DNA of 64,000 bases from Octopus sinensis (lineage: Eukaryota): the NCBI RefSeq assembly GCF_006345805.1, contig NC_043000.1:115568001-115632000 (forward strand). Direction: 5' to 3'. The position numbers and the translations under genes are program-made. The notes under the pieces are model-generated. The model ran no database searches and had not been told where the DNA came from. It saw only the letters and a list, made by a program, of their open reading frames with translations. This document shows positions 1,217-61,793 of this stretch, in pieces; within the stretch, counting starts at the first letter, position 1; each line of letters opens with the position of its first letter.

Positions 1217-1310
1217 CTCGCGATAGCTCAGTTGGTAGAGCGGAGGACTGTAGTTTGTTATTTAAATGTCTGACATCCTTAGGTCGGTGGTTCGAATCCG
1301 TCTCGCGAGA
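1217..1310 (+). tRNA. trnY-GUA: tRNA-Tyr(GTA), 21-nt intron 1254-1274
   Basis: Full cloverleaf, acceptor CTCGCGA/TCGCGAG, A73, A and B boxes intact. Confidence 0.95.
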
Positions 1311-1713
1311 TTCCTGGTTACTTTTGTTTTTATCTTACTTTTTTTGCTGAAAAGCTAAACTGTTGAGAAGTATTTTGTTATTTCTCTTTATGCTTTGAGT
1401 TCCAATTCTACGAAAGCCGGCTTCAACTTTAATCATTGTGGTATTGTCAACGAAGAGAATCAATAGAATTGGTTTCTCCAAAGGGCGCAATGCTTCTTTA
1501 AACGTGCCATATAACCCCTCATAACTCTTTTATTTTTGGGAATCTTCATATCAAACAAAGAAAAAAAAATCGTAATTTGATCCCCGCCTTCCATACTAAG
1601 TGCGTAACGCTTAGCCATTGTACGCACTTCGGGATTGAATGTCAAAAGCAGGTGGTTGTAAAGCGAAGTTCTTAAACATACAACCATGGCTGCTCAAAAT
1701 GAATACAAGTATA

Positions 1714-1785
1714 TGGCCAAATGGGGATCGAACCCACGACATTCGTGTTATTACCACGATCTCTAACCGACTGAGCTAACCGGCC
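1714..1785 (-). pseudogene. trnI-AAU: tRNA-Ile(AAT) pseudogene
   Basis: Two 1-nt deletions, C32>G and other substitutions versus the array consensus. Confidence 0.85.
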
Positions 1786-2281
1786 TTCATTGTAGATTAC
1801 CCGTTTTAACACACTGGGAGAGAGAGGGTGTATGTGTATGTGTGTGTGTGGTGTGTGTGTGTGTGTGTGTGTGTGTGTGTGTGTCAGAGCAGAGAGAGAG
1901 AGAGAGGAGGAAGATAAACAGACAGAGATTGACTGATAGACAGACAAATAGATAGATAGATAGATAGATAGATAGATAGATAGATAGATAGATAGATAGA
2001 TAGATAGATAGAAAGAGAGACGTGAAGGTTTCCGGGTTTTTCCTAAACACTGCTATATTCCGTCCCCGTTTCCTTACATACTAACAATTCCCCCCTTCCT
2101 TCAAAATCTTCCCTTATACCACTTGCCTCCCCTCCCCTCCCCCTCGTGGTCTTCCTCGTCCTCCTCCTCTTCCTCTTCCTCCTCCTCCTCCTCCTCCTCC
2201 TCTCATAATATCAAACAGCTAGCGTACTTTTAACTTCACATTTCTTATGACTAAACTATTTGACAACCAGCGTCTCAGTGT

Positions 2282-2375
2282 CTCGCGATAGCTCAGTTGG
2301 TAGAGCGGAGGACTGTAGTTTGCTATTTAAACGTCTGACATCCTTAGGTCGATGGTTCGAATCCGTCTCGCGAGA
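2282..2375 (+). tRNA. trnY-GUA: tRNA-Tyr(GTA), 21-nt intron, A50 variant
   Basis: Intact cloverleaf followed by T-run terminator. Confidence 0.95.
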
Positions 2376-2654
2376 TTCGTGTTTTTTCTTTTTTTTTATT
2401 AAAATATTTCCTTGTTTTATCCTATATTTGTTTCAGTCGTTGGACTTCGGCCATGCTGGAACAACTTCTTGAGGTGGTTGCGTCGAGCAAACCGACTCAA
2501 TATATTTTTGTGTAGTGCTATTTTATCGGTCATTTTGCCGAAACGCCAAGTTACGGGGACGTAAACAGACCAACACCCGTTGTGAAGCGTTGGTGGGACG
2601 GCATACACAACGACACATATATACACAACAAGCTTTCACACAGCTTCTGTCTTT

Positions 2655-2860
2655 TCTACTCTAGGCACAAGGTCCAAAATTTTGGGACAGGGCGCCAGTC
2701 GATTGGTACTTAATTGGTACTTAATTTATTGACCCCGAAAGGATAAAAGGCAAAGTCGGCCTCACCGGAATTTGAACTCAGAACGTAAAGATAGACGGAA
2801 TACCCCTAAGCATTTTGCCCGGTGTGCTAACGATTCTGCCAGCTTGCCGCCTTCACACGG
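2655..2860 (-). mobile_element. tRNA-derived SINE, family M (gcctttcatcctttcggggtcgataaattaagtac core)
   Basis: Reverse complement of the element at 13361; B-box-like GAGTTCAAATTC. Confidence 0.75.
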
Positions 2861-2894
2861 CTTCCGTCTACCAGATTCACTGACAATGCATTGG

Positions 2895-3403
2895 GGGTCA
2901 ATATAAAGACCCGCTCTCAGGAAAAAAAAAAAAAAAAAGAATAAATAACCAGCCTGGTGGGTGCTAACAAGTGTGTGGAAAATGAAGACTGCGATTCTGA
3001 GAAAAATTTGTTTGTAAAATTTCAATTTTTCAACAAGAAAAAAAAAAATAAAAAAGAATATATACCCTGAGGCCTTCAAGCAGGCTATCCACATGCTAGA
3101 AATAACAGCCAAATCTTACAAAACAGCGATAACATAATGAAATTTCCAAAAGGCGATTTTTGAAAATTTTGTTTTCAGAATCGTATCCTCCGTAACCCCA
3201 AAACGTGGGATTCCGTTACATAAAATTCAATATATATCCATTTTACCCCAATTTATGACGGAAAAATTGGATCTTGTGAATTTCCCGTAAGTCCAGGGTC
3301 GTCACCGAACATTTTTTGCTTCGTATTCGTATTCCACACACCTGTTAATACCCACAGGCTGGTTAATTTTTTTTGTTTCCGGTTGAGGATCTTTATATTG
3401 ATC
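2895..3403. mobile_element. long-TIR non-autonomous DNA element A (internally deleted copy)
   Basis: Ends ggtcaatataaagacc... / ...gatctttatattgatc; flanking gcattgg duplicated. Confidence 0.65.
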
Positions 3404-59110: not shown

Positions 59111-59537
59111 TTTTTAGATTTTAACTATTTCTGTGGGAGGTTTTGGAACGTAACATCCATGCAGTCTCCCCACTACAAGAGAACGCATTTTCCCAAGGTG
59201 CCGTGCAGTGGTTCCGAACCCGAAAGCACGAGTTTGCCCAGCTAGCTCCTTAAGCTACTGTCATGTCTGCGTCCTAATTAAATGAAATTTCGAAATATTA
59301 TATTTCTGTTGATTTATGAGCGAGGTGGACAGGCATAATCGTTAAAATATTGGAGTAAATGAAAGGCAAAGTTAACTTGCGGCCGTTTGAACTAAGAACG
59401 TAAAGATTTGTAACTAAATAACGTGGGACATTTCTTTCGATGCTCTAACGATTCTGTCAGATCACTCTCATCATATATTAAATCAATGTAATTGTTCTAA
59501 ATTTAATTTAAATACTTGCAAAAAAAAAAAAAAGAAA

Positions 59538-59630
59538 TCTCGCGAGACGGATTCGAACCATCGACCTAAGGATGTCAGTTCTGGATTATTATACTACAGT
59601 CCTCCGCTCTACCAACTGAGCTATCGCGAG
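59538..59630 (-). tRNA. trnY-GUA: tRNA-Tyr(GTA), 20-nt intron, A50 variant
   Basis: Intact cloverleaf on -; intron tataataatccagaactgac. Confidence 0.95.
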
Positions 59631-59924
59631 ACAACGCGATTTGGAATGTAAAATAATTGTGACATAAGAAATGTGAAATTAAAGTTACAACTGTGAGCGA
59701 ATGAGAGAAGGAGATAGAGAGAGAGGGAGAGAGTGGTAGAGGGAGATATGACGGAGAAGGAAAAGAAAGTGGGGGAGGCAAAAAAAGCGGAAGGGGGAGA
59801 GAGGGATGAGAAGGATAAATGAAAGCAGAGAGAGAGAGAGAGAGAAGTATGTGTTAGACTTTGAGACATACTCCTCCTTCTCCCCTGCCTTTTACGTGTG
59901 TGTGTCTGTTGTATGTGTTCATAT

Positions 59925-60234
59925 GCTTTTCTACTCTAGGCACAAGGCCTGAAATTTTGGGGAAGGGGGCCAGTTGATTAGATCGATCCCCAGCATGCAT
60001 CCGAAACGACGAAAGGCAAAGTCAGCCTCGGCGGAATTTGAACTCAGAACGTAACGGCAGACGAAATACCTATTTCTTTACTACACACAAGGGGCTAAAC
60101 ACAGAGGGACCAACAAGAACAGACGAAGGGATTAAGTCGATTATATCGACCCCAGTGCGTAACTGGTACTTAATTTATCGACCTCGAAAGGATGAAAGGG
60201 AAAGGCGACCTCGGCGGAATTTGAACTCAGAACG
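59925..60234 (-). mobile_element. dimeric SINE family M, interrupted by mariner
   Basis: Core motifs; mariner starts at its TA. Confidence 0.7.
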
Positions 60235-60236
60235 TA

Positions 60237-61522
60237 CGAGGGACGTTCAATAAGTAATGCCTCTGACCCACTTGCAGTTGTTTGATCTAGCTGAAATTTT
60301 GCATGTGCAATCATATCTCTATAGAGTAAGTGGCAAATTACAGCTCTGAATTAATTGTGGTTTCTGATTTACAGGTGTTTGAACCGAGTCAAGTGTGAAA
60401 TGGAGCCTGTTGAGTGTCGAGCAGTGATCCAGTTTTTGTATTTGAAAGGACGCACACCACGGGAGACTTTTGATGAAATGAAAGTAACTTATGGTGATGA
60501 TGCCCCATCATATGACCTTGTAAAACGCTGGCATCGTGAATTCAAACATGGTCGGAACTCTGTGGAAACAGCTCCCAGATCTGGTCGCCCCCTTCTGCCA
60601 TTGCTGAGGCATCTGTCCGTCAAGTTGAGGCTGCCATTTTGGAAGATCGACGCATAATTATACGCCAAATAGCCCATGAGGTCAAGATTAGTACCGGGTC
60701 TGTGGAAACTATCATTCATGACCATTTGCATATGCAAAAGGTGTCTGCCAGATGGATTCCCAGGTTGCTCACGCCTTTCCAGAGGCAAGAACGCGTCGAG
60801 TACTCGAGGGTGAATTTGGAGATGTGCCAAGAAGATGAGTCAAAATTTTTCAAAAGACTGATTACACAGGATGAAACCTGGGTCCATCACGATGATCCAG
60901 AGACCAAAGCCCAGTCAATGCAGTGGAAGCACCGTGACTCACCCCCTCCAAAGAAGGCAAGGGTGCAGCCCTCCGCTGGCAAGGTCATGCTCACAGTCTT
61001 CTGGGACCAGGACGGAGTAGTGATGACAGATTTCCTGGCAAAGGGTACCACAATTGCAGGAGCCTATTATGCTTCACTTTTGAGGAAATTAAGAGAAGTT
61101 ATCAAAATCAAGAGGCGGTGAAGATCAGCAAAGGCATCCTCCTCCTGCAGGACAACGCTCCGGTCCACAACTCGCTTGTCGCCAGATCAGAAGCACAGGC
61201 GTATGGCTATGAACTCCTCCCCACCCCCCCTACTTTCCTGACCTTGCATCCTCTCATTTTCACCTCTTCCCAATCATGAAGTTGTTTTTGAAAGGAAAGC
61301 GTTTCCCAGATGATGCAGCCTTGATTTCTGAAGTCATGTTGAGGTTGGAGGACCAAGCTGGGTTCTTCTACAAAAACGGTCTTCAGAGCCGCATCAAACG
61401 ATGGGAGAAATGCGTAACTCTGGGTGGTTCCTATGTAGAAAAAGACTAATAACTGTGCCAAGTTTCGTTGCTCTACTGCTATGGGAAGTGTGTCAGGGGC
61501 ATTACTTATTGAACGCCCCTCG
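60237..61522 (+). mobile_element. full-length mariner (DD34D) transposon, 1286 bp
   Basis: 31-bp TIRs CGAGGGACGTTCAATAAGTAATGCCTCTGAC / GTCAGGGGCATTACTTATTGAACGCCCCTCG (2 mismatches), TA on both sides. Confidence 0.95.
60400..61449 (+). pseudogene. mariner transposase pseudogene
   Basis: MEPVECRAVIQFLYLKG..., WIPRLL, ITQDETW, LLQDNAP, PDLA motifs; frameshifts near 60590 and 61225 and a stop at ~61120. Confidence 0.92.
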
Positions 61523-61698
61523 TAGACCCTGAATGGTAAAGATGACCAAGGCGAGATTTGAACTCAGAACTGTAACTAAATTGTGTTAGACATTTCGTTA
61601 GAAATTCCAACGATTCCGCAGTCCGCCATTCACTTTGATGAGAAATAATGTTATATTTGTAAAGTTAATTCAAATATTACAAAAAGAAAAAAAAAAAC

Positions 61699-61793
61699 TC
61701 TCGCGAGACGGATTCGAACCACCGACCTAAGGATTACAGTTAAACTAAATTACACACTACAGTCCTCCGCTCTACCAACTGAGCTATCGCGAG
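61699..61793 (-). tRNA. trnY-GUA: tRNA-Tyr(GTA), 22-nt intron
   Basis: Intact cloverleaf on -; upstream TTCTTATGAC ends at -31. Confidence 0.95.

Follow-up and report, generated by a model that had tools for sequence, protein, structure and literature searches.

A dense array of tRNA-Tyr and tRNA-Ile genes in Octopus sinensis with signs of nested duplication, recombination and purifying selection

The stretch of DNA analysed here (the window) comprises 64,000 nucleotides of the Octopus sinensis genome (contig NC_043000.1 of assembly GCF_006345805.1, positions 115,568,001 to 115,632,000, forward strand), and its positions 1217-61793 hold an array of genes for two tRNAs, tRNA-Tyr(GTA) and tRNA-Ile(AAT). 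A census by blastn, with one Tyr copy and one Ile copy as queries, gave 26 Tyr-like and 29 Ile-like loci (Table 1), which are named below by isotype and first coordinate. No other isotype was found in the array by blastn, Rfam or ARAGORN run on the window. Rfam scored 48 of the 55 loci above the gathering score (32.7-64.3 bits versus 29), all of them as RF00005 tRNA; the 7 loci under that score are decayed copies, and there were no Rfam matches in the window outside the 55 loci. Across the window ARAGORN called 42 tRNA genes and, apart from a few mis-parsed Tyr genes, assigned them to Tyr or Ile. Its calls of "Leu-TAG" and "???" were rejected, as they correspond to Tyr genes with a wrongly parsed intron. 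Two control loci, of 36 kb from an octopus and of 20.7 kb from another invertebrate host, contained no tRNA genes, so the density of tRNA genes (tDNAs) in the window is beyond chance. The window is eukaryotic in character: it has microsatellites, its Tyr genes all contain an intron, and oligo-T runs follow the genes.

The loci were scored against the consensus of each isotype, and "intact" was taken to mean a mature sequence identical to the consensus. Thirty loci are strictly intact (14 Ile copies that reproduce the 74-nt consensus and 16 Tyr copies whose two exons are exact), 15 show 1-3 differences and 10 show at least 4. Decay is unevenly distributed: nine of the ten loci of the last group lie between 12.9 and 37 kb, and all twelve loci in 49682-61793 are intact. 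Among the slightly altered copies, the one at 4494-4587, with anticodon ATA, could be dead or could decode differently.

Concerning the layout, convergent neighbours Tyr(+)/Ile(-) form 19 pairs, accounting for 38 of the 55 loci. The gap from Tyr to Ile falls in two classes, one of about 400-830 nt (14 pairs) and another of about 1.05-1.4 kb (5 pairs, including one from which a 1.9-kb insert was subtracted), and successive Tyr genes follow each other at periods of 1.07-2.4 kb. Considering all 54 gaps between consecutive tDNAs, 32 are shorter than 1000 nt and the other 22 measure 1.04-5.65 kb. A preliminary description of the same DNA had counted 26 Tyr loci, 29 Ile loci and no other isotype, which the census reproduced exactly, and had described them as mostly convergent pairs, in agreement with the figures above. 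Its estimate of about 33 intact copies came close, the strict count being 30 with the 15 copies of 1-3 differences besides, while the spacing of about 1.3-1.5 kb that it gave proved less regular.

The Tyr gene has C1-G72, A73 and the anticodon G34-T35-A36 followed by G37. Exon 1 has 37 nt, and each Tyr gene carries an intron of 19-23 nt that starts directly behind position 37. In the Ile gene the anticodon is A34-A35-T36. An A box, TAGCTCAGTTGG, is read at positions 8-19 in 30/30 intact copies, and a B box at positions 52-62, also in 30/30, as GGTTCGAATCC in Tyr (generalised, GGTTCGAAnCC) and as GGTTCGAGCCC in Ile. When the 40 nt downstream of each locus were scanned, a run of at least four T was found to start 1-25 nt past the 3′ end in 55/55 loci, the runs spanning T4-T17. 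The Tyr introns form three families by their 3′ ends (...CTGAC, ...CTGTA and ...CTGTT), and for 14/14 distinct variants the predicted fold prolongs the anticodon stem into the intron. There are two Tyr isodecoders, with either G50-U64 (the majority) or A50-U64 in the T stem, the latter at Tyr-2282, 12678, 51002, 55075 and 59538. A50 changes the G50-U64 wobble to a Watson-Crick pair and adds about 2 bits to the Rfam score. Its occurrence in unrelated lineages of flanks and introns suggests that it is an ancient polymorphism or was exchanged among copies.

To judge from this anatomy, the array loci are complete type 2 genes of RNA polymerase III (Pol III) rather than the heads of short interspersed nuclear elements (SINEs). 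An origin of the loci as tRNA-derived SINE copies or as retroposed tRNA pseudogenes has in its favour the abundance of tRNA-derived SINE-like repeats in the genome, fragments of which occupy the spacers. It is nevertheless extremely improbable, considering that the cloverleaves are perfect, that the Tyr copies retain their introns and that homology takes in both gene types and continues hundreds of bases into either flank. Moreover, canonical Pol III terminators stand directly after the genes instead of A-tails or tails typical of long interspersed nuclear elements (LINEs), no target-site duplications were seen at the loci, and the bodies are, as argued below, under selection.

Self-comparison of the window displayed nested duplications of different ages. 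The best direct-repeat pair (12914-14243 and 20053-21392) is 97.4% identical over 1.3 kb, and Tyr and Ile genes lie together in blocks of 1.3-6 kb that are 92-97% identical, while older Tyr-Ile units are 65-82% identical. No array-wide period was found with Tandem Repeats Finder, whose maximum period of 500 bp is below the unit length. Neither a fixed unit nor a gene order repeated head to tail was found but nested blocks of 1.3-6 kb with 65-97% identity, the 1.4-kb run at 28.6-34.6 kb being the only regular stretch. Some pseudogenes form families with common mutations (Ile-13825, 20964 and 34440; Tyr-19711, 28307 and 36571), which means that each family arose once and was then copied by segmental duplication.

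When the closest partners of the two flanks of each gene were compared, mosaics came to light, with upstream and downstream partners often discordant. The clearest case is Tyr-55075, whose 5′ flank is that of Tyr-50245 (1 difference in 80 nt) and whose intron, A50 and 3′ flank are those of Tyr-51002, the switch lying inside the invariant 37-nt exon 1. From the match on either side, Tyr-55075 bears the footprint of unequal homologous recombination between two direct-repeat Tyr genes. The position of the junction shows that the conserved tRNA bodies themselves act as crossover sites.

Since repeat-rich regions are prone to errors of assembly, the array might be thought an artefact of duplicated or mis-joined repeats. 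However, no two long copies are identical (most pairs are at 70-94%, with the best pair as given above), which, on sequence comparison alone, argues against such an origin. The copies also differ by indels, inserted transposons and microsatellites, and graded divergence and a recombinant gene are features of evolution, all of which makes an artefact very improbable.

The conservation of the genes was compared with that of their surroundings. Among the 14 exact Ile copies the body shows 0% pairwise difference and the 150-nt flanks on either side 28-38%. Among the 16 exact Tyr copies the values are 0% for exon 1 and 1.3% for exon 2 (due to the sole G/A50 site), as against 43% for the intron and 36-57% for the flanks, so that the Tyr intron is an internal neutral control. 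Seven blocks duplicated recently were compared, in which 13/883 positions of live bodies (1.5%) had changed versus 878/15808 (5.6%) outside, with an odds ratio of 0.25 for live bodies relative to the block remainder (p = 1.9e-9), i.e. live bodies evolve about 4-fold slower. Decayed bodies in the same blocks changed at 26/424 positions (6.1%), not distinguishably from outside (p = 0.59). A raised divergence of gene-proximal flanks, such as transcription-associated mutagenesis would leave, was not seen, proximal flanks being not above distal ones, in part because of the conserved upstream islands described below.

Purifying selection on the mature tRNA is supported as the economical reading of the contrast between exons and intron, because gene conversion alone would have to halt at both exon-intron borders in every copy. 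Concerted evolution by gene conversion, with no selection on tRNA function, does find some backing in the recombination between copies attested by Tyr-55075 and in the frequent discordance of flank partners across the two sides of a gene. Yet an intron of 19-23 nt diverged by 43% sits between invariant exons of 36-37 nt, and the flanks diverge right outside the mature ends. In addition, the decayed copies evolve neutrally and have not been rescued, and the G50 and A50 isodecoders coexist. It seems reasonable to consider conversion without selection as very unlikely to be the cause of the identity of the bodies.

The preliminary description had remarked that mature sequences are essentially identical while flanks diverge and that other copies decay, and had proposed birth-and-death under purifying selection. 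The bodies at 0% against flanks at 28-57%, the neutral rate of the decayed bodies in the duplicate blocks, and the contrast of 1.5% with 5.6% agree well with these three points. Its term "satellite-like" was an overstatement for nested duplications of different ages that lack an array-wide period.

Another zone of conservation lies upstream of the genes. With one representative per lineage, pairwise identity has its maximum at -40 to -21 (0.81/0.71 for Tyr and 0.64/0.72 for Ile), falling to 0.39-0.49 between this island and the gene and to 0.2-0.5 farther upstream. The Tyr island contains TTCACATTTCTTATGAC followed by TAAACTATTT; TTCACATTTCTTATGAC, with up to 3 mismatches, has 21 matches, all at about -47 to -31 of Tyr loci (0.40 expected). 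The Ile island is a GACGTCA resembling a cAMP response element, followed by a TTAAAA core; its motif GACGTCAATGTYAAAA, with up to 2 mismatches, has 22 matches, all at about -35 to -20 of Ile loci (0.16 expected). The A/T-rich cores of the islands lie at the position where TFIIIB and the TATA-binding protein bind, and TATA-like elements upstream of tRNA genes are important in insects, plants and fission yeast. The islands (about -45 to -21) might be gene-external promoter or regulatory elements, the array being a co-regulated module of stage- or tissue-specific tRNA supply in cephalopods (e.g. in oocytes, embryos or the nervous system), set apart from the housekeeping copies that lie dispersed; as a whole, this proposal is speculative and rather unlikely. 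If it were true, the A50/G50 isodecoders and the intron variants would be natural expression tags. Most Tyr genes also have a polypyrimidine (CCT/CTT)n tract at about -150 to -90, e.g. at 1100-1130 and 2120-2200.

Taken together, these observations make it probable that the locus is a genuine nuclear Pol III tDNA array with type 2 promoters, shaped by nested duplication and recombination under purifying selection, with birth and death of its members. Its ancestor would be a convergent pair of a tRNA-Tyr(GTA) gene, with an intron of 19-23 nt at 37/38, and a tRNA-Ile(AAT) gene. The array was evidently amplified through nested tandem and segmental DNA duplication and, to judge from the mosaic genes, reshuffled through unequal homologous recombination at the invariant tRNA bodies. 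Some 30-45 copies have evidently been held intact by purifying selection on the mature tRNA, and the copies that escaped it decay at the neutral rate and are re-duplicated in turn. Each gene would be its own transcription unit, with TFIIIC on the internal A and B boxes and TFIIIB at about -30, probably aided by the gene-type-specific island with its A/T-rich, TATA-like core. Pol III would stop at the T4-T17 run 1-25 nt downstream, the tRNA splicing endonuclease would act in the splicing of pre-tRNA-Tyr, and A34 of tRNA-Ile would be deaminated to inosine.

Tandem and clustered tRNA genes are well known. The 3.18-kb tDNA repeat of Xenopus laevis holds eight tRNA genes of several isotypes, is homogeneous and is present in some hundred copies; as in the octopus, it consists of tandem animal tDNAs, tRNA-Tyr included, each with its own Pol III promoter, and it differs from the octopus array, which has two isotypes and heterogeneous units. 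The SYY array of Arabidopsis, with a repeat unit of about 1.5 kb, is the closest analogue. By its description (PMC12308677), SYY is a tandem of tRNA-Ser/Tyr/Tyr genes on chromosome 1 of Arabidopsis thaliana that shares with the octopus array the presence of two isotypes, one of them an intron-bearing tRNA-Tyr, a major mature sequence accompanied by minor variants and pseudogenes, several intron variants, an intact core beside degenerate regions and growth by tandem duplication. SYY is a regular Ser-Tyr-Tyr unit in one orientation, unlike the convergent Tyr/Ile genes of the octopus with their variable spacing and nested duplications, and it belongs to a plant in which silencing and root-tip reactivation have been measured, while the octopus array is known from sequence.

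The clusters of zebrafish chromosome 4 (PMC11417395; PMC2888827) are likewise large and repetitive, lie in transposon-rich animal DNA and contain many isodecoders and pseudogenes, but they comprise many isotypes and thousands of genes, with a link to maternal expression, versus two isotypes in the octopus. The human tRNA variable-number tandem repeat at 1q23.3 (PMC4041453) is also a tandem of tDNAs prone to unequal recombination and copy-number change; its 7.3-kb GC-rich unit, CTCF site and proposed boundary role have no evident counterpart in the octopus. A eukaryote-wide survey (Bermudez-Santana et al. 2010, PMC2888827) recorded heterogeneous tDNA clusters from many lineages and saw that they turn over fast; the octopus array resembles them in its neighbouring tDNAs of different isoacceptor families within 1 kb, its rapid turnover and its genes mixed with pseudogenes. 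By the criterion of that survey (<1000 nt, more than one isoacceptor family), the window contains a chain of small clusters and not a single one, as two families are present but only 32/54 gaps pass.

Arrays of this kind are well known, as the preliminary description had said in general terms of tandem tRNA clusters (with Xenopus and Entamoeba as examples), and the octopus array adds another one, set apart by the convergent Tyr and Ile pair, the irregular nested structure and the host. That description knew of no published account of a Tyr-Ile array, and none was found in a literature search that included octopus and cephalopod papers, with subscription journals outside its coverage and with mitogenome papers dominating the results on Tyr/Ile arrays. 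The search found no description of the organisation of cephalopod nuclear tRNA genes either. The exact Tyr gene had 0 matches in the metagenome contigs of the Joint Genome Institute (JGI).

Several points weigh against the proposed explanation. The 0% obtained for the bodies is partly circular, as "intact" was defined by identity; the test on recent duplicates is independent of that definition and answers the objection. Strong purifying selection on each copy is not trivially expected among about 30 redundant ones. The conservation of the upstream motifs could come in part from shared ancestry, and the intact Tyr-42194, Tyr-57802 and Ile-39404, as well as the near-intact Ile-42695, are without most or all of the motif, which is thus not required for conservation of the body. 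Finally, the comparable SYY array is described as largely silent in most tissues (PMC12308677), so that to call the octopus array active is a deduction, drawn from its intact promoters, its terminators and the selection on its genes.

This last point leads to the possibility, which is real though on the unlikely side, that the array is mostly a silent heterochromatic reserve transcribed in particular cells or stages, e.g. oocytes or early embryos. The layout is like that of SYY, with an intact stretch (12 loci, 49682-61793) beside the degenerate 12.9-37 kb, and the intron variants and the repeat-rich setting with transposon insertions are as in SYY, which is switched off in the majority of tissues and comes on again in root tips (PMC12308677). 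Highly repetitive clusters are the source of the tRNAs deposited maternally in zebrafish (PMC11417395). On the other hand, chromatin state is not readable from sequence, and selection tells that the genes are used, not when or where. A silent reserve refines the explanation by duplication, recombination and selection rather than replacing it.

Table 1. Coordinates of the array, its tDNA loci, duplicated segments and examples of the upstream motifs (positions in the window; differences are counted against the consensus)
Feature	Position	Strand	Remarks
Two-isotype tDNA array	1217-61793		26 Tyr(GTA) + 29 Ile(AAT) loci
Tyr upstream motif	1170-1186	+	TTCACATTTCTTATGAC, example (-47 to -31), then TAAACTATTT
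tRNA-Tyr(GTA)	1217-1310	+	intact; G50 isodecoder; 21-nt intron
tRNA-Ile(AAT) pseudogene	1714-1785	-	8 differences; Rfam 32.7 bits
tRNA-Tyr	2282-2375	+	intact; A50 isodecoder
tRNA-Ile	3539-3612	-	intact
Ile upstream motif	3632-3647	-	GACGTCAATGTYAAAA, example (-35 to -20)
tRNA-Tyr variant	4494-4587	+	2 differences: G34>A (anticodon ATA) and anticodon-stem change; terminator kept
tRNA-Ile	5983-6056	-	intact
tRNA-Tyr	6923-7016	+	intact
tRNA-Ile	10382-10455	-	intact
tRNA-Tyr	11262-11355	+	1 difference (D-loop)
tRNA-Ile	11785-11858	-	intact
tRNA-Tyr	12678-12771	+	intact; A50
Ile pseudogene	13825-13893	-	10 differences; mutations common to 20964 and 34440
6-kb segmental duplication, copy 1	14240-20209	+	92% identical to copy 2; 7 tDNAs
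Tyr, decayed	14444-14537	+	4 differences; Rfam 37.3
tRNA-Ile	15081-15154	-	intact
tRNA-Ile	16631-16704	+	intact; inverted orientation
tRNA-Ile	17382-17455	-	intact
tRNA-Tyr	18091-18184	+	intact
tRNA-Ile	18586-18659	-	1 difference
Tyr pseudogene	19711-19799	+	11 differences; lineage of 28307 and 36571
Ile pseudogene	20964-21027	-	11 differences
6-kb segmental duplication, copy 2	22992-28759	+	7 tDNAs
tRNA-Tyr	23185-23278	+	2 differences
tRNA-Ile	23789-23862	-	2 differences
tRNA-Ile	25288-25361	+	intact; inverted orientation
tRNA-Ile	26040-26113	-	3 differences
tRNA-Tyr	26704-26797	+	intact
tRNA-Ile	27197-27270	-	1 difference
Tyr pseudogene	28307-28381	+	truncated; 18 differences
Tandem run of Ile-only units	28590-34638	+	units of ~1.4 kb, 91-92% identical
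Ile, decayed	28805-28875	-	6 differences
Ile pseudogene	30170-30228	-	10 differences; deletions
tRNA-Ile	31600-31671	-	3 differences (2-nt T-loop deletion)
tRNA-Ile	33073-33146	-	1 difference
Ile pseudogene	34440-34508	-	10 differences
tRNA-Tyr	35071-35160	+	3 differences at 3′ end; duplication block stops ~40 nt downstream
tRNA-Ile	35754-35827	-	intact
Tyr pseudogene	36571-36660	+	13 differences
tRNA-Ile	37087-37160	-	1 difference
tRNA-Tyr	38483-38576	+	1 difference
tRNA-Ile	39404-39477	-	intact; upstream flank unrelated, A-rich, without Ile motif
tRNA-Tyr	40302-40396	+	intact; second intron family (...CTGTA)
tRNA-Ile	40867-40940	-	intact
tRNA-Tyr	42194-42288	+	intact; upstream motif mostly missing
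tRNA-Ile	42695-42768	-	1 difference (D-loop)
3.9-kb segmental duplication, copy 1	46494-50370	+	93.8% identical to copy 2
tRNA-Tyr	48420-48513	+	1 difference
tRNA-Ile	48930-49002	-	3 differences
tRNA-Ile	49682-49755	-	intact
tRNA-Tyr	50245-50340	+	intact; 23-nt intron; 5′-flank donor for chimera 55075
tRNA-Tyr	51002-51093	+	intact; A50; 19-nt intron; intron and 3′-flank donor for chimera 55075
3.9-kb segmental duplication, copy 2	51332-55194	+	end is chimeric Tyr-55075
tRNA-Tyr	53248-53341	+	intact
tRNA-Ile	53757-53830	-	intact
tRNA-Ile	54511-54584	-	intact
tRNA-Tyr	55075-55166	+	intact; A50; recombinant (junction in exon 1)
tRNA-Tyr	56519-56610	+	intact; 19-nt intron
tRNA-Tyr	57802-57897	+	intact; without upstream motif
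tRNA-Tyr	59538-59630	-	intact; A50; inverted orientation
tRNA-Tyr	61699-61793	-	intact; inverted orientation

Concerning the surroundings of the genes, several mobile elements interrupt or adjoin the array. A foldback-like insertion of 1.94 kb (7069-9005), just downstream of Tyr-6923, has inverted arms of about 630 bp that are 98.6% identical, each with 157-bp tandem repeats; it replaced about 31 nt kept in the sister unit, which is uninterrupted (4640-4670), and no clear target-site duplication was found at it. A decayed Penelope-like retroelement (42900-44620, plus strand, its CT-rich, low-complexity tail reaching about 44920) also interrupts the array and is the source of the markedly negative GC skew seen at 42-46 kb. 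Its reverse-transcriptase core contains YIDD and is broken by stops and a frameshift, and a GIY-YIG-like tail is read in a different frame; its relatives carry PF26215 and PF01541, and its best protein match (74%) is in a metagenome contig. Positions 60232-61526 (plus strand) are occupied by a DNA transposon of mariner type that has terminal inverted repeats and a transposase split by frameshifts into four pieces of open reading frame. The DNA of this transposon is 95% identical to a contig from a public run and 92% to a contig of a host that otherwise shares no repeat, and its protein matches reach 85% in a mantis shrimp but only 64% in Octopus bimaculoides, with others in crustaceans and abalone, a spread too wide to indicate the host by itself. 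This pattern of identities suggests that horizontal transfer among marine invertebrates may have occurred. Past the last tRNA gene, an open frame of 313 amino acids (62988-63929, minus strand) has a LINE-type reverse-transcriptase domain, with best relatives about 50% identical (top 51%) and no match on record in an exact look-up; the right-hand border of the array may lie here.

A SINE-like unit of 184 bp forms a 3.3-copy tandem array at 37696-38344, and its fragments occur in many Tyr-Ile spacers (e.g. 13412-13593, 49143-49400 and 62088-62382), indicating that it was part of the ancestral repeat unit. The family is also found in locus L005 of Octopus bimaculoides. About 25 segments of a 36-kb locus of that species, taken around its mariner match, match the SINE-like families of the window at 69-85% identity, and the 20.7-kb control locus has only mariner in common with it. 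These shared repeats assign the window to an octopus-type cephalopod genome. A 30-bp minisatellite at 58604-59026 has 14 copies and a higher-order period of 178 bp, with a short related copy at 61933-62046, adjoining the last Tyr gene. Several spacers are filled by long microsatellites, of the types (GT)n, (GATA)n, (GA)n and (CAC)n (1820-2010, 32018-32214 and 57046-57300), and much of the length variation between units is due to such tracts.

The octopus array leaves the general knowledge of tRNA arrays unchanged; what is added here is a formal test of selection, an intron control, a recombinant gene and the upstream islands. Within 61 kb it offers a compact natural experiment on the evolution of multi-copy tRNA genes, in which selection limited to the mature sequence, neutral decay, re-duplication of pseudogenes and crossover inside an exon all come together in one window. 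As candidates for gene-external promoter elements of Pol III in molluscs, the upstream islands are open to testing, and with the variants of intron, trailer and isodecoder the activity of Pol III could be measured copy by copy in a cephalopod.

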